From contig CATNEN010000038.1 of NCBI GenBank assembly GCA_950097015.1, forward strand, positions 3,100,001 through 3,164,000: a DNA stretch of 64,000 bases, in the 5' to 3' direction. Each line of letters opens with the position of its first letter. Positions within the stretch are counted from its first letter, which is position 1. The notes under the pieces are model-generated. The model worked only from the letters and a program-made list of their open reading frames with translations. It was not told where the DNA came from and searched no databases. This DNA comes from Macrostomum hystrix (Eukaryota > Animalia > Platyhelminthes). Made by a program: the position numbers and the translations under genes. Below are positions 16,368 to 25,900 of this stretch, piece by piece.

Positions 16368-17079
16368 ATGGTGAGATAATTACAGACTGGCAGGTGAGAT
16401 AAGCACAGACTGGCAGGTGAGATAAGGACAGACTGGCAGGTGAGATAAGGACAGACTGGCAGGTGAGATAAGCACAGACTGGCAGGTGAGATAATTACAG
16501 ACTAGCAGGTGAGATAATTACAGACTGGCAGGTGAGATAAGCACAGACTGGCAGGTGAGATAAGGACAGACTGGCAGGTGAGATAAGGACAGACTGGCAG
16601 GTCAGATAATTACAGACTGGCAGGTGAGATAAGCACAGACTGGCAGGTGAGATAAGGACAGACTGGCAGGTGAGATAAGGACAGACTGGCAGGTGAGATA
16701 AGCACAGACTGGCAGGTGAGATAAGCACAGACTGGCAGGTGAGATAATTACAGACTAGCAGGTGAGATAATTACAGACTGGCAGGTGAGATAAGCACAGA
16801 CTGGCAGGTGAGATAAGGACAGACTGGCAGGTGAGATAAGGACAGACTGGCAGGTCAGATAATTACAGACTGGCAGGTGAGATAAGCACAGACTGGCAGG
16901 TGAGATAAGGACAGACTGGCAGGTGAGATAAGGACAGACTGGCAGGTGAGATAAGCACAGACTGGCAGGTGAGATAATTACAGACTAGCAGGTGAGATAA
17001 TTACAGACTGGCAGGTGAGATAAGCACAGACTGGCAGGTGAGATAAGGACAGACTGGCAGGTGAGATAAGGACAGACTG
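16368..17079. repeat. 23-bp minisatellite, ~31 copies, TREX-NSUN2 spacer
   Basis: Unit GGTGAGATAA(GC/GG/TT)ACAGACTGGCA. Confidence 0.95.
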
Positions 17080-17434
17080 GTGGGTGTGCAAAATCAACAA
17101 AGTACTACATCTAGCATCACAATAAGTCCCTTAAGATGCATTACATACTTTCTGTGTATTTTACAGTCTTAAATATCAATATTCATACAAATCATCAGCT
17201 CAAATCTCTGGACTTTAAGGCTATTGCACAGAGAAAAGTACACGGGTCCTTAAAACACGTCTTGAAAATTCTAAAAAATAACTTGAAATGCCTTTCTAAA
17301 ACAAGCGGAGAAAAAATGCGTAGCTTTTAAATCAAATCCAAAAAACAACAGATCTACATTGAACTACTGCAAGTCAGTAGTATAGAGTATATAGTATACA
17401 CTATCCTATAACCTGCGTAGGTTGAACATGACTG

Positions 17435-17896
17435 TTAGTCAGCGGCTGCGGCAGACTCGGCTGCCGAAATCTTTGCCGGCGACACTGTCTCGAAGGGCAC
17501 AGCGGCGGCCTCGAGCAGCTCCTGACAGTCGGGCAGGCGCAGCAGCAGCAGCCGGAGCAGCGCTTCGCAATCGCCGAGGCCGCTGTGACTGGCCTGCGGT
17601 TTGGCGCCGTTGAATGCCCGGCTGTACAGCTGCTCCAGGCTAAAGTTGGCCTGCCGCTGCTTTTGCGGCTTCGGGATCGACCTGCAAGCATTGCAGGGTG
17701 TCTGTGTGACAGACAGCCAGACACCCAGGACAGACAGACAAACAGACAGACACCCAGGACAGACAGACAGACAGACACCCAGGACAGACAGACAAACAGA
17801 CAGACACCCAGGACAGACAGACAGACAGACACCCAGGACAGACAGACAGAAAACAGAACAGACAGACACCCAGGGCAGACAGACATACAGACAGTT

Positions 17897-17985
<89 letters not shown>

Positions 17986-18469
17986 ACAGACACTCCTACC
18001 CCGCAGCCAGCCGGGTCTCCAGCTCCCTCAGCACAGGCAGTGTGTCAGCGCACATGACGCCGTCCAGGCAGCAGGCGGAGCAGTCGCCAGCGGCAGCGGC
18101 CAGCGTGAGCTCAGCTTTGAGCAGCGGGAAGTCGAATCTGGCCCCGTTGTGCGCCACCATCAGCACTGGACTGTCCAGTCGCCGGACGAAGCGATCCAAC
18201 AGGTCGACGGCGGTGGAGTCGAAGGCTGACTGGCCGCGAAGGCAGGCTCCGTGCAGGCCGGTGACGTTGGCAGCCGAAGCAGTGACCTCGCAGCCGGGAT
18301 TGAACAGCAGGCAGAGCCGGTTCAGCGCTCTTGGCAGGCAGTCGGTGCCGCGACGTCGTTGAAGATCGGCTCGATCGGCAGTCAGGAGCGCCAGTTCGGT
18401 GACGCGAGGCCTGTACAGGCCCGTGGTTTCCAGATCCAGCACCGCTAGGGTGCGCCAGGCCTGCCGCTG
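17435..18469 (-). CDS. TREX1/TREX2-family DEDDh 3'-5' exonuclease, paralog 2; no genomic ATG before the catalytic motif
   Basis: Exons 18469-18000 and 17681-17435 (717 nt). ExoI DLETTGL..VTELAL, Exo[27 protein letters not shown], ExoIII HSGLGD. No C-terminal TM segment. Confidence 0.88.
17708..17990. repeat. Compound (GACA)n/(GGCA)n microsatellite in the TREX paralog 2 intron
   Basis: GACA runs with CACCCAG interruptions, then a GGCA run. Confidence 0.95.
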
Positions 18470-18495
18470 CTGCAGCCGAGATGAAAATTGCAGGT
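18470..18495 (-). promoter_or_regulatory. Unpaired 3' splice acceptor (candidate SL trans-splice site) of TREX paralog 2
   Basis: Minus strand: cacctgcaattttcatctcggctgcAG|CAG CGG CAG GCC TGG, phase 0 with the ORF; no upstream ATG exon recognised. Confidence 0.55.
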
Positions 18496-18524
18496 GGATA
18501 CTCAAGTAAAATAGGGATCAATTT

Positions 18525-19135
18525 GGTGGGATTCTAATTGGGAACATCGAGGTAGAATTTGAATTGTTACGGTTTGATTTCAAGGTAGAATCGGATTCTA
18601 ACAATGGGGTTTCACTGTATAATGGGATTCTAATTCTAATTCCATTGTTGGTAGAATGGGATTCCAACAATGGGATTTCAAGGTAGATTGGAACTCTAAC
18701 AATGGGATTTCGAGGTAGAATGGGATTCTAACAATGGGATTTCAAGGTAGAATGGGATTCTAACAATGAGAATTCAAGGTAGAATGGGATTCTAACAATG
18801 GAGAATTATAAGGTAGAATGGGATTCTAACAATGGAGAATTATAAGGTAGAATGGGATTCTAACAATGGAGAATTATAAGGTAGAATGGGATTCTAACAA
18901 TGGAGAATTGTAAGGTAGAATGGGATTCTAACAATGGGATTTCAAGGTAGAATGGGATTCTAACAATGGGAATTCAAGGTAGAATGGGATTCTAACAATG
19001 GGAATTCAAGGTAGAATGGGATTCTAACAATGGGAATTCAAGGTAGAATGGGATTCTAACAATGGGATTTCAAAGGAGAATGGGATTCTAAACGTGGGAT
19101 TCCACCGTAGGACTGGGATTTTAACGGTGGGATTA
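18525..19135. repeat. ~30-32-bp minisatellite upstream of TREX paralog 2
   Basis: Unit AGGTAGAATGGGATTCTAACAATGGGA(T/A)TTCA and variants. Confidence 0.9.
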
Positions 19136-19694
19136 CAAGTTGCTATAGTAATTTTTTCAATTGAATAAAATCGTTTCTCTGGTAACAAAATAATTTTTTG
19201 TAAGTCGAAGTCAATAAAAAATCTAGATGTATTTAAATAAAATCACTAAAATGAGAACAAAAAGCTAAGATCTATGCGACAAAGGTATACAAAATGAGTG
19301 CAAATGCTAGTAGTAGTACTTGTACTAGTAGGTAAAAGTTTTAACAAAACATCTGAATTCTTGATGTTTCATAAATATGCAAGTTCAATAACATACTATA
19401 ATCTTTATCAAATAATATGAATCTATGTAAAGTATAGTAGCAGCCATAACAATACGGCTAATGAAGGTGAAAAACAGTTTTTTTCACAAATCAACAAATC
19501 ATAACGATTTGCTCTCAAATTATCTCTGTTCATAATCCGATAAAAAATTTTACATCCATAAAAAGAAAATTAATATGTACGCCAGTAGTGGCTTGTTTTA
19601 AGCAGATCAACGATAATGAGTTTCAATAGCGAACTGCCTGCACTGGTGTTACTAGACATCTTCCTCATTACTGTAGCCTACCCCCTAATTAGCC

Positions 19695-20135
19695 TAGCTC
19701 GCCTCCCTAATCAGTACAGCCCACCTCACTCCTCCCTAATCAGTTCAGCCCACCTCACTCCTCCCTAATCAGTTCAGCCCACCTCACTCCTCCCTAATCA
19801 GTTCAGCCCACCTCACTCCTCCCTAATCATTTCAGCCCACCTCACTCCTCCCTAATCAGTTCAGCCCACCTCACTCCTCCCTAATCAGTTCAGCCCACCT
19901 CACTCCTCCCTAATCATTTCAGCCCACCCCACTCCTCCCTAATCGGTACAGTTCAACTCACTCCTCCCTAATCAGTTCAGCCCACCTCACTCCTCCCTAA
20001 TCAGTTCAGCCCACCTCACTCCTCCCTAATCAGTTCAGCCCACCTCACTCCTCCCTAATCGGTACAGTTCAACTCACTCCTCCCTAATCAGTTCAGCCCA
20101 CCTCACTCCTCCCTAATCAGTTCAGCCCACCTCAC
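19695..20135. repeat. 29-bp minisatellite, ~15 copies, starting just after the TREX paralog 1 stop codon (3' UTR)
   Basis: Unit TCAGTTCAGCCCACCTCACTCCTCCCTAA. Confidence 0.93.
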
Positions 20136-20147
20136 TGATACAAGGTT

Positions 20148-21584
20148 TCACAGCTTGTAGGGAAAGTCCGCCAGCTGCTGCCGGGGCTTGGCCTTGTACT
20201 TTGGCGGCACAGAGTCGAATGGCACAGACTTGTCGCGCAGCCACTCCAAGCAGGGCCCCAGACGGCGCATCAGCACACGGAGGAGGCTGGCGCAGTCCTC
20301 CGCTGCCGAATGCGCGTCAACAGGCCGCCAGCCAAGATGGCGATAGTGCAGCTCGGAGAGGCCGCAACGACTGCCCGGAGGTTCAAGACTGCGAAACATC
20401 GGCAGGGTGTCGCAGCACAGCGGGTTGGATTCCAGTCTGCGGACCGAATTGGCCTTAATATATTATTCCTAACATGATGCATTCATAACTACCTACTTCT
20501 GTCTTCATCTCATACTGTCCACTATAATAACAATATAGTACACCTGCCTATATTGGGACAGATGTGCAGCCGACAGCACAGCCGTAGCTATTGGAGACTG
20601 CGTACGGCTGTTCAGTCCATGGACTGGGGGCGACGCCACACACACCCTCAATTACCCCAGGTGCCCATTAAACAGCTGGGTGAACTTAACTAATGCAAAG
20701 TTCAGTGTCGCGCTAAAGGATACAAATTGTTACAGTGGAGTCGGGAATCGAACCCCAGACCTTCAAGTCGTGAGTCCAATGCTCTAAACCACTAGGCTGC
20801 AACCCCCACTATCTTCATCTCATACTGTCTACTATCATTTGCTAATCCTCGCTCCGCTGTTCTCATACTTTCTGCTCACTTCTCACCTGACACCGACAGC
20901 ATCAAGTTCACTTCTCACCTGACACCGACAGCATCAAGTTCACTTCTCACCTGACACCGACAGCATCAAGTTCACTTCTCACCTGACACCGACAGCATCA
21001 AGTTCACTTCTCAAAAGAGGAAAATCGAACGGCAGGCCATTGTGCGCCATGAGCACAACGGGCGGCTCCAGGCGTCTCAGGAAGGTGTCAATCAGAACAG
21101 CAGCGTCCCTATCAAACTCTTTCTGACGCTCAAGCGAGACATTGTCCAGTCGTGTCAGAGCCTCAGCCCCAGGATGAATGGGCTGCATGGGGTGGAACAC
21201 CAAGCATAGACTGTTGGCGACTCGCGGCAGCTTAGCCGACGGTGCGTCAACCGCATCAGCACGGGCATCTGGACCATCCGGCTGAGCCGCGGCCTCCAAC
21301 AAGTTGAAGGTGTGCACTGCCAGCATGGCCAACTCCGTGATGCGCTGCCTGCCTTCCAAGCCGGTGGTCTCCAGGTCCAGCATCACCAGCGTGCCGGAAA
21401 CCAACGCCGAATTACCGCTGGTCTCCGTGGCTACGTCACTGCCGAAAGTGACATCGGCAGAAGATGTTGCATCACTGACCGACGCCGCATCACCGCCTAA
21501 TGTATCCTGACCGCATGCTATGACATCATATAATCGAGTACATTCAACAGCTGAGGCGTCGTCGGCGGCGGCAGTGTCGGCGGC
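20148..21584 (-). CDS. TREX1/TREX2-family DEDDh 3'-5' exonuclease, paralog 1; ORF open from the acceptor at 21585
   Basis: Exons 21584-20983 and 20436-20148 (891 nt). ExoI DLETTGL..ITELAM, ExoII MAHNGLPFDFPLL, CCDTL, ExoIII AHSAAED. The first in-frame ATG is only 2 codons before the catalytic Asp. Confidence 0.88.
20526..20807 (-). mobile_element. tRNA-derived SINE family 1, full length, with ~24-bp target-site duplication
   Basis: Head GGGGGTTGCAGCCTAGTGG (A box)..GGTTCGATTCC (B box); flanked by TCTTCATCTCATACTGTC(C/T)ACTAT at 20502-20525 and 20812-20835; homolog at 26.5 kb. Confidence 0.85.
20877..21012. repeat. 32-bp tandem repeat (4 copies) made of the exon end plus 5' splice site of TREX paralog 1
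   Basis: Sense unit TGAGAAGTGAACTTGATGCTGTCGGTGTCAG|G; the first copy is coding (RSELDAVGV). Confidence 0.92.
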
Positions 21585-21610
21585 CTGAAAGGGAATTAAA
21601 ATTTTAATTG
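21585..21610 (-). promoter_or_regulatory. Unpaired 3' splice acceptor (candidate SL trans-splice site) of TREX paralog 1
   Basis: Minus strand: aaaattttaattccctttcAG|GCC GCC GAC; strong pyrimidine tract, phase 0 with the ORF. Confidence 0.65.
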
Positions 21611-21694
21611 TGACGGAAATTTATACATAACAGAAGCAAGAAAACTGTTGTTGGATCAAGACCAATACAACTTCTCAAAGACGAGTGCTAACTG

Positions 21695-22270
21695 GACCCA
21701 ATGCTACTAGACAAAGACCCAATGCTGCTAGACAAAGACCCAATGCTACTAGACAAAGACCCAATGCTACTAGACAAAGACCCAATGCTACTAGACAAAG
21801 ACCCAATGCTACTATACAAAGACCCAATGCTACTAGACAAAGATCCAATGCTACTAGACAAAGATCCAATGCTACTAGACAAAGATCCAATGCTACTAGA
21901 CAAAGACCCAATGCTACTAGACAAAGACCCAATGCTACTATACAAAGACCCAATGCTACTAGACAAAGACCCAATGCTACTAGACAAAGACCCAATGCTA
22001 CTATACAAAGACCCAATGCTACTAGACAAAGATCCAATGCTACTAGACAAAGATCCAATGCTACTAGACAAAGACCTAATGCTACTAGACAAAGACCCAA
22101 TGCTACTAGACAAAGACCCAATGCTACTAGACAAAGACCCAATGCTACTATACAAAGACCCAATGCTACTAGACAAAGATCCAATGCTACTAGACAAAGA
22201 TCCAATGCTACTAGACAAAGACCTAATGCTACTAGACAAAGACCCAATACTACATTGCTACTAGACAAAA
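21695..22270. repeat. 21-bp minisatellite, ~27 copies, upstream of TREX paralog 1
   Basis: Unit CAATGCTACTAGACAAAGACC. Confidence 0.95.
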
Positions 22271-22660
22271 AGCAAATGCGAATTCGCAAAGACCACGTTT
22301 AGGTAATAAAACTAAAACTTCAAATATGTATTCTAAGAACTTAAAGTTATGTATGATTCTCATTTTCTGAACAAAACATGCTACGAGTAGAAATCTGAAC
22401 AAGGACTTATTAGTATAAAAAATCTGAAAATTGGCAGACTGAGTGTGAATATAATTCAAGAAAAAATTACAATCAATGTCGAACTCTGACAGTCGCACAT
22501 TTTAAGAGCACCAAATTTATAAAAAACTTCACACAAAAATACTAAATTACAATGCCGATATGAATTCATGTATTCAAAAAGGTACTGCACAAAAAATGGT
22601 AAAAATAAGCAAAAATGGAATGTTGAGACTGGCCTACTGTCTTCATCAGTTTAACTAAGA

Positions 22661-22912
22661 GCTGTCCCTCAGTGCACCTGTCCCTCAGTGCACCTGTCCC
22701 TCAGACAACCTGTCCCTCAGACCACCTGTCCCTCAGACCACCTGTCCCTCAGACAACCTGTCCCTCAGACAACCTGTCCCTCAGACAACCTGTCCCTCAG
22801 ACCACCTGTCCCTCAGACCACCTGTCCCTCAGACAACCTGTCCCTCAGACCACCTGTCCCTCAGACCACCTGTCCCTCAGACCACCTGTCCCTCAGACCA
22901 CCTGTCCCTCAG
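22661..22912. repeat. 16-bp minisatellite, ~15 copies, beginning at the stop codon of the RING-WD40 gene
   Basis: Unit ACCTGTCCCTCAGAC(C/A). Confidence 0.93.
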
Positions 22913-22914
22913 CC

Positions 22915-25900
22915 TCAAGCAGCCCGGAAGCGGAAGACTTTCATCCAGCCATCGCCAGAGCCGGTGAAAAGCAAGTCCTGCATGATAGAAATGGACGACA
23001 CGCTGTCACAGTGCCGCTCCGTCTGCTGACGCAGCACCGCGCTAAGAACCACCCCGGTGCTGTGCCCGGCTCTGATGGCAGCATCTGCGCTGCTGACGCT
23101 GTTCTGCCGCGAGTTCAATAGGCGCCAAACCTGCAGTGCGCCATTCTGACAGCCGGCGATGGCAAACGCGCCGTCGCTTATTGAGCTGAGGCAGGACAGG
23201 GCGGTGCCGCCAGCCAGGCAGACCTGGCAGGAGGGGTTTGATTGACAGCTGAGCAATGATTGGCTGGTTGGGTTTGATTGACAGCTGAGCAATGATTGGC
23301 CGGTTGGGTTTGATTGACAGCTGATCAATGATTGGCCGGTTGGGTTTGATTGACAGCTGAGCAATGATTGGCTGGTTGGGTTTGATTGACAGCTGAGCAA
23401 TGATTGGCTGGTTGGGTTTGATTGACAGCTGAGCAATGATTGGCTGGTTGGGTTTGATTGACAGCTGAGCAATGATTGGCCGGTTGGGTTTGATTGACAG
23501 CTGAGCAATGATTGGCTGGTTGGGTTTGATTGACAGCTGATCAATGATTGGCTGGTTGGGTTTGATTGACAGCTGATCAATGATTGGCTGGTTGGGTTTG
23601 ATTGACAGCTGAGCAATGATTGGCTGGTTGGGTTTGATTGACAGCTGAGCAATGATTGGCTGGTTGGGTTTGATTGACAGCTGAGCAATGATTGGCTGGT
23701 TGGGTTTGATTGACAGCTGAGCAATGATTGGCTGGTTGGGTTTGATTGACAGCTGAGCAATGATTGGCTAGTTTGGTTGTTTTACAGTTGAGCAATGAGG
23801 AACAGCGGATCTTTGACTGAATGAACAGTGATAAAAGCTGGAATTAGAGCGGGCGGATTAGCACAGAGCACTTTGTCAACTGACTGGAGGCTAACCTGAA
23901 ATCTTCCCGTGTTGGCGCAGAACAGCCAAAGCGACTGGGCCGGCACGCCAGTACCCAGCAGGATCCGGTCTTCCGTCACTGTGATGCAGGTGATGTCAGT
24001 CAGCAATTCGTGGCCATATCGCTGATAGCCGCCTGGCTCGTCCAGCTGCAGCGGCGGCTGCTGGTTGCCCTGGGGCTGGAAGGAGGCCCGCAGGTCGGCC
24101 AGCACGATGAAGCGGTGCAACTCGGCCTGGCATGCGCAAAGCAGGGCGCCGCGCCACGCATCGAAGGTCAGGACGCGAACCGACTGACCGGAAGGCACGC
24201 TGAAGGTCTGGAGGTGTTGCAGATTGCTGCACTTCCACACCTGAATGATGGACACAAAATGGCTTGGTCTCTTCAATAAGCTATGACCAGATTCTAAGGA
24301 GTAGCTATGACCAGATTCTAACGAGTAGCGATGACCAGATTCTAAGGAGTAGCTATGACCAGATTCTAACGAGTAGCGATGACCAGATTCTAAGGAGTAG
24401 CCAGGACCAGATTCTAAGGAGTAGCCATGACCAGATTCTAACGAGTAGCCATGACCAGATTCTAAGGAGTAGCCATGACCAGATTCTAAGGAGTAGCCAT
24501 GACCAGATTCTAAGGGCTAACCATGACCAGATTCTAAGGGCTAACCATGACCAGATTCTAAGGGCTAACCATGACCAGATTCTAAGGGCTAACCATGACC
24601 AGATTCTAAGGGCTAACCATGACCAGATTCTAGGGGCTAACCATGACCAGATTCTAAGGAGTAGCCATGACCAGATTCTAAGGAGTAGCCATGACCAGAT
24701 TCTAAGGAGTAGCCATGACCAGATAACCGATAGAAGCTATGACCAGATTCTAAGGAGTAGCCATGACCAGATAACCGATAGAAGCTATGACCAGATTCTA
24801 AGGAGTAGCTATGACCAGATAACCGATAGAAGCTATGACCAGATTCTAAGGAGTAGCCATGACCAGATAACCGATAGAAGCTATGGGGTCAGCGGTATGG
24901 GAAGAATCGCCTCTAACTGACAGATGTCGCCCCACCCCAGGAATATGAAATGCCCAAACCTTTAGCTCGCCGCGGCTGCCGCTAAACAGGAGGCCGTTGG
25001 GACTGGCCGCGATAGCCGTAATGCACTCCGCGTGCGCGGCTGGCACAGTCTTGACTCTGTTGATGCCGCGAGCAAATCTGGCCAGCTGGACCAGACTGCC
25101 GTTTCTGCAGCCGACGAACACGTACTTGTCATCGTCTGGCCCGGGCTTCTTGCAGGCGCAGACAAAACTGTCAGCGTAGAGAGCGTCGCTAAGACGTTCA
25201 ACAGCGCGAGCGTTGCCGACGTGACCGGAGCACAGCTGCTGAATGTTCCAGGCCACGATTGCGCCTGTGGAGTCCAACGACACCAGCTGGAGTTGGTCGG
25301 CGATCAGCAGCAGCGACACCACGGTGTTGGAGTGCCAGTTGATGTTGGCGATGCAGGTCAGGTAAGAGGGCGCGATGGACTGGACAGTCTGCAAGAAGGT
25401 GGGAGCTAATTTGAAATCTGATCATAATTAACCTAGAAATCAGGTCACAGCTTCCCCTAAAATCTGGTTACAGCTCGTCCTAGAATCTGGTCATACCTTG
25501 TCCTAGAATCTGCTCATAGCTTGTCCTAGAATGTGGTCATACAATGTCCTAGAATGTGGTCATACCATGCCGTAGAATCTGGTCATAGCTTGTCTTAGAA
25601 TTTGGTCATAGCTTCCCCCTAGAATCTGGTCACAGCTCCCCCCTAGAATCTGGTCAAAGCTTCCCCATAAAATCTGATCATAGCTCCCCCTTAGAATCTG
25701 GTCATAGCTTCCCCCTACAATATGGTCAAATCTTCCCCCTAGAATCTGGTCAGAGCTACCCCTTAGAATTTGGTCATAGGTTGTCTCAGAATCTGGTCAT
25801 AGCTTGTCTCAGAATCTGGTCATAGCTTGTCTCAGAATCTGGTCATAGCTTGTCTCAGAATCTGGTCATAGCTTGTCTCAGAATCTGGTCATAGCTTGTC

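Follow-up and report, generated by a model that had tools for sequence, protein, structure and literature searches.

How can a nuclease be made from a gene whose exons hold no usable start codon? This question is raised by two tandem genes for TREX-like exonucleases in the flatworm Macrostomum hystrix. They lie on the minus strand of a 64,000-nucleotide (nt) stretch, hereafter the window, that covers positions 3,100,001 to 3,164,000 of contig CATNEN010000038.1 (assembly GCA_950097015.1); coordinates are those of the window unless another contig is named. Each gene has two exons, and their spans are 21584–20148 (paralog 1) and 18469–17435 (paralog 2). An earlier note, made from the sequence alone, had proposed that the missing AUG is donated to both genes by a trans-spliced leader. 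On the evidence presented here, it is very probable that both TREX genes are trans-spliced at the acceptors that precede 21584 and 18469, and that their translation begins at the AUG that ends the spliced leader (SL).

By inspecting the 5’ part of both genes, we found that neither holds a genome-encoded AUG able to yield a complete protein. At the acceptor of paralog 2 (AG at 18470..18471, ggctgcAG), the minus strand reads ctgcAG|cAG|cggcAG|gcc and thereby offers three candidate exon starts (18469, 18466 and 18460), all in phase 0, the two extra AGs lying 3 and 9 nt downstream of the one that is used. Exon 1 (18000..18469) has no ATG in any frame over its first 309 nt; the first one, at 18160, encodes the Met of LMVAHNG in the ExoII motif. 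Walking upstream in frame from the acceptor, we met no ATG over 16 codons before reaching the stop at 18520. In paralog 1, the acceptor (AG at 21585..21586, ccctttcAG) places the exon start at 21584, also in phase 0, from which 67 codons run without a stop up to the first ATG of the frame (21383, hereafter Met68), 2 residues ahead of the ExoI Asp (MLDLETTG). Upstream of Met68 lie seven out-of-frame ATGs, with open reading frames of 2–19 codons, and the in-frame walk upstream of the acceptor gave 12 codons without ATG before a stop at 21623. What the earlier note had read from the letters could thus be reproduced: paralog 2 without ATG upstream of ExoI and with its first Met in ExoII, its three AG acceptors in phase 0, the tttcAG acceptor of paralog 1 at 21585–6 in phase with about 67 stop-free codons and followed by a first Met that precedes the catalytic Asp by 2 residues, and intact catalytic motifs in both genes. 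In shuffles, an open 67-codon frame arose in 7.9% and a 309-nt ATG-free stretch in 6.9% of cases. Since neither rate is rare, the sequence features alone are only suggestive, and it is the RNA contigs that carry the weight.

These contigs come from k=31 assemblies of three runs (X2, X3 and X4) of one study. Both introns are absent from them, that of paralog 1 showing CT..AC on the plus strand, and they hence derive from spliced RNA. For paralog 2, contigs of X2, X3 and X4 cover 17400–17682, then 18001–18470, and end with a further 21, 21 and 24 non-genomic letters, respectively; every contig record goes from 17682 to 18001, and not a single letter differs over 18001–18470. For paralog 1, an X4 contig consists of 20 loose letters followed by 21585–20983 (record 23, colinear over 20983–21585) and then by 20436–20118, and an X3 contig likewise has 20 loose letters ahead of 21585. 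Each of the five contigs aligns as far as the G of the acceptor AG, as predicted if an SL precedes the exon, because the ...ATG leader itself terminates in G. All five also end at most 30 letters past the acceptor, and the same contigs continue 110–273 letters beyond the 3’ side. Such a break, 20–24 letters past the acceptor, is what a k=31 assembly should show on reaching a leader common to thousands of mRNAs. We therefore infer that the 20–24 non-genomic letters are the SL, whose expectation they match in length (at most 30) and in the terminal G; they are known by these two features and not by their sequence. Among the joints listed for the spliced contigs of the three runs, none leads to a cis-spliced upstream exon and none was accepted as a fusion of paralog 1 with paralog 2. 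One X3 joint (17561/21555) was rejected as spurious, its 23-letter side falling in a GC-rich CAG/GCC-type tract. In addition, contigs pass colinearly through the stop codon of paralog 1 into its 3’ untranslated region (UTR).

The published SL of Macrostomum lignano is 35 nt long, and its terminal ATG is its only ATG (PMC8629364); this terminal ATG of the Macrostomum SL is probably a start codon (PMC10468722). The last 20 letters of the M. lignano SL have 31 exact copies in the M. hystrix genome. There, the SL RNA gene copies read ...CGGTCTCTTACTGCGAAGACTCAATTTATTGCATG|GTAAG, that is ...TTGCATG|GTAAG, with a leader that does not differ from the 35-nt SL of M. lignano; their fold (z −3.6) has three hairpins and an unpaired Sm-like site, AUAUUUUUAG. 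Moreover, both TREX acceptors fit the trans-acceptor motif described in M. lignano, [T/C]TNCAG (PMC8629364).

The SL copies of the genome also differ in their arrangement. Part of the SL RNA genes are arrayed in tandem, one unit recurring about every 11.6 kb, on contigs C15, C17 and C42 of the assembly (e.g. C15:9730, 21375 and 33020). At loci L002, L005 and L003/L004/L006 (around position 1500), SL copies have no GT donor and are followed by unrelated sequence; they resemble retroposed trans-spliced RNAs, and L003, L004 and L006 form one repeat family. These non-donor copies and an SL RNA gene (L007) share 10 further upstream letters, GCCGTAAAGA, so that the leader exon may be about 45 nt long, that is, longer than the published 35 nt.

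We propose that each TREX pre-mRNA would be cis-spliced once and trans-spliced to the Macrostomum SL directly before 21584 (paralog 1) or 18469 (paralog 2). The predicted junction of paralog 2 is ...AATTTATTGCATG directly before CAGCGGCAG, i.e. the leader joined to CAGCGGCAGGCC at 18469, whereas that of paralog 1 would be ...AATTTATTGCATG directly before GCCGCCGAC, i.e. the leader joined to GCCGCCGACACT at 21584. The SL AUG is in frame with both open reading frames, frame 0 has no stops and no earlier AUG is present in the 35-nt SL. The terminal AUG of the SL would be the first AUG of each mature TREX mRNA, in phase 0 with the exonuclease frame, and would serve as initiator, at which ribosomes presumably start. 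Paralog 1 would then give M-AADTAAADD..., with a 67-residue acidic tail ahead of the TREX core, and paralog 2 would give M+QRQAWRT..., with a short N-terminus. Without the leader, a full-length catalytic protein would be impossible. The SL-dependent expression of both DNases that the earlier note had put forward is thereby supported, by the phase-0 acceptors, by an SL ending in AUG and by contigs that leave the genome at these acceptors. The exon starts it had predicted, 18469 and 21584, are exactly where spliced contigs of the three runs depart; the SL ending in AUG that it presumed is encoded by the organism’s own SL RNA genes, which end in ATG|GTAAG; and the N-termini MQRQAWRT.. and MAADTAAA.. 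are predicted from the observed joints. It had found no upstream ATG exon, and two of the outcomes it had named as contrary to it (a cis-spliced upstream exon and a paralog fusion) are also absent among the listed contig joints.

In protein searches, the closest proteins are those of M. lignano, with 74–76% identity. The paralog 1 orthologues, BOX15_Mlig015697g1 and BOX15_Mlig001461g1, bear the annotation “partial”; they have no Met, and their first residues are AA..., like the AADT... of M. hystrix, and the paralog 2 orthologue (A0A1I8FK..) begins with QQRQAWRT, also without Met. A Met is thus missing at the start of all three M. lignano models, which begin at positions close to those of the M. 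hystrix genes. Compared to paralog 1, its M. lignano orthologues have as N-terminal tail a longer AAQEAP-repeat tract, and the frame of the tail is open in all three copies despite the diverged sequence. No transcript-derived Macrostomum protein showing an SL-derived Met was returned by the protein searches.

The identity of the encoded enzymes was assessed by querying each exon separately. Searched against PDB chains with phmmer, exon 1 of paralog 2 and exon 1 of paralog 1 matched TREX1 with E values of 2e-22 and 3e-19, respectively, and the second exons matched the C-terminal part of TREX1/2 that carries the ExoIII His/Asp (E 4e-3 and 1e-4). Exon 2 also matched 9l8a, a chain deposited as “exodeoxyribonuclease III” (E 7e-7). 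In this exon-by-exon search, Pfam RNase_T came just under its gathering score, and TREX identity is therefore based on the PDB searches instead. The catalytic residues are intact in both genes (ExoI D-x-E, ExoII D and ExoIII H-x4-D). Exon 1 of paralog 1 carries the acidic low-complexity extension of 67 codons and then ExoI (DLE) and ExoII (AHNG..FDFPLL), and its exon 2 carries ExoIII (AHSAAED); in paralog 2, the TREX core begins 6 codons past the acceptor, with ExoI (DLE) and ExoII (AHNG..FDFPLL) in exon 1 and ExoIII (SHSGLGD) in exon 2. DLE and HNGxxFDF are invariant across alignment A1, and HSGLGD (paralog 2) and HSAAED (paralog 1) align with the TREX HSAEGD motif. Judged by sequence, the products of both genes are intact DEDDh exonucleases resembling TREX1/TREX2. 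When the whole assembly (42 contigs, 220,453,370 bases) was searched in six frames, TREX loci were found at these two places only.

Several points weigh against translation of both genes from the SL AUG. The context of this AUG is weak (U at −3) and could permit leaky scanning; the 67-codon extension of paralog 1 shows no sequence conservation with M. lignano, and chance alone opens such a frame in about 8% of shuffles; the contigs cannot show true 5’ ends; and the X2–X4 runs are not recorded as RNA, their RNA origin being deduced from the removed introns. Furthermore, the 20–24 loose letters were assigned to the SL indirectly and not read letter by letter, which leaves room for a tiny genome-encoded ATG exon, cis-spliced to 18469 and/or 21584, to which these letters would belong instead of the SL. 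We consider such an exon quite improbable. Across three runs and two genes, each of the five contigs ends 20–24 letters past the acceptor, whereas a unique exon with its 5’ UTR would be expected to run longer in some of them; the three M. lignano gene models are likewise without a start; and both acceptors fit the trans-acceptor motif.

Slightly less probable still is a scenario in which paralog 1 is trans-spliced but translated from Met68, the 67 upstream codons being a 5’ UTR that is open by chance. The extension is of low complexity and cannot be aligned with the AAQEAP-repeat extension of M. lignano, which would agree with such a start, as would the shuffle rate and the weak context of the SL AUG. 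However, the SL AUG comes first, and seven out-of-frame AUGs intervene before Met68. Stops number 3 and 6 in the other two frames and none in frame 0, and in both M. lignano copies the frame is open over 110–130 codons. Moreover, SGTLV just ahead of Met68 is kept in M. lignano and is aligned to TLIF, the first beta-strand of TREX1, hence a start at Met68 would cut into the fold. The missing start codons, the tandem arrangement and the position amid minisatellites could also be taken to mean that the two genes are pseudogenes (duplicates that decay or are non-coding), or that they form one fused paralog 1–paralog 2 transcript. This is very improbable, given that they are the sole two TREX loci in the genome, with open frames and intact catalytic residues, that both are expressed and correctly spliced, and that they keep 74–76% identity with M. 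lignano; as for a fusion, contigs run through the paralog 1 stop into the 3’ UTR, and exon 1 of paralog 2 ends in loose letters, with no listed joint to paralog 1. We thus retain translation from the SL AUG in both genes as the preferred reading.

The remaining parts of the two genes, all on the minus strand, are as follows. In paralog 1, exon 1 (20983..21584) is separated by a GT..AG intron (20437..20982; joint 20436/20983 in X3 and X4 contigs) from the coding part of exon 2 (20148..20436), whose stop is at 20148–20150; contigs cover 20080–20436, so that the 3’ UTR reaches at least to 20080. In paralog 2, the GT..AG intron (17682..17999) consists almost entirely of a (GACA)n microsatellite, and the coding part of exon 2 (17435..17681) ends with a stop at 17435–17437; its 3’ UTR extends below 17400, as contigs run 110–273 letters past this position.

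Nine tandem-repeat arrays, with periods of 4–36 and up to 27 copies, lie within 6.8 kb (17003–23798), where they occupy introns and spacers up to the splice sites, as (GACA)n does in the paralog 2 intron. Where exon 1 of paralog 1 meets the intron, a 32-nt unit is perfectly repeated in tandem (4.3 copies, 20876–21013); it copies the final 24 nt of exon 1 together with the GT donor, which creates four identical donor sites, the first of which is used by the long X4 contig. An X2 joint at 20436/20887 was considered as alternative splicing and rejected, since its 30-letter side falls in the four identical 32-nt repeats and its placement is ambiguous. The same intron contains a high-copy element (20445–20879), over which contig depth is 700–2000 compared to about 10 on the exons, and in which position 20757 shows A>C in many contigs originating elsewhere. 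A tRNA-like stretch lies near 20725–20800 inside this element, for which ARAGORN called no tRNA. The element is probably a repeat of the short interspersed nuclear element (SINE) kind.

The tandem arrangement also raises the question of whether the two genes share a precursor. For SL trans-spliced genes of M. lignano, a repeat-adjusted spacing of 1 kb has been used as operon threshold (Ustyantsev & Berezikov 2021, PMC8629364). From the paralog 1 stop to the paralog 2 acceptor there are 1,677 nt (spacer 18472..20147), of which minisatellites at 18576–19139 and 19702–20136 make up 999 nt; the adjusted distance is 678 nt, below the threshold. The TREX pair thus resembles Macrostomum SL operons (PMC8629364) in lying on one strand, in having a downstream gene that is very probably trans-spliced and in its adjusted spacing of less than 1 kb. 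RNA of the spacer is seen as a single piece of 160–210 nt (19524–19730), present at exon-like depth in contigs of all three runs, which break in the minisatellites. This piece could stem from a polycistronic precursor or represent a long 3’ UTR or a separate small transcript, and a polycistronic precursor spanning both TREX genes is possible. Upstream, on the same strand, lies a neighbour (22915–24276) whose last exon is WD40-like (stop at 22915; Pfam WD40 E 6e-5, below the cutoff). The distance from this stop to the paralog 1 acceptor is 1.33 kb, about 0.8 kb of it minisatellite, and a three-gene operon that includes the WD40-like neighbour is conceivable.

That a flatworm SL AUG is usable as initiator is established and goes back to Cheng, Cohen, Ndegwa & Davis 2006 (J Biol Chem 281:733), a study cited both by PMC9851317 and by PMC12582326, the latter with regard to the terminal ATG of the SL. 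According to the account of that work in PMC9851317, the SL AUG lies in frame in 28% of S. mansoni transcripts that are trans-spliced and is required by more than 40 cDNAs. The mechanism has been known since 2006, the TREX genes are a well-supported further case of it, and they open no new question. What is special here is that both TREX genes of the genome would be leader-dependent and that the missing genomic start is common to M. lignano. This would add to the flatworm proteins dependent on a leader AUG an example that is conserved in two species and takes in a whole small enzyme family. In practice, gene callers that require a genomic ATG truncate such genes or mark them as partial, as happened in the M. 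lignano models, and the N-termini predicted to be correct for annotation are M+QRQAWRT... and M+AADTAAA.... A bolder view would be that the entire Macrostomum TREX complement, that is both genes and their M. lignano orthologues, lost its genomic starts, that DNase production became strictly gated by the SL as a conserved safety or regulatory lock, and that the genes may be co-expressed as an operon. We regard this view as rather unlikely; if the lock existed, precursors or transcripts that are not trans-spliced would be barred from yielding active nuclease.

Compared to the mammalian TREX1 and TREX2 (PDB 7tqp, 2ioc and 1y97), the M. hystrix proteins have all of ExoI DxE, ExoII HNG..D and ExoIII Hx4D in a core of about equal length, and the short N-terminus of paralog 2 resembles that of TREX2. 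In contrast, they lack the C-terminal membrane tail of the TREX1 type, paralog 1 adds its 67-residue acidic N-terminal tail, and each gene has one intron and a start codon very probably supplied in trans. With the flatworm slORFs (PMC9851317), the two genes share an SL ending in AUG, a phase-0 acceptor, an open reading frame without a start of its own and an SL AUG that is predicted to come first in the mRNA. Unlike the slORFs of Schistosoma, the case described here is found in a free-living macrostomid, involves the two members of a single enzyme family and is also preserved in another species, with initiation at the SL AUG being here the likely course, as deduced from the order of AUGs and the reading frame.

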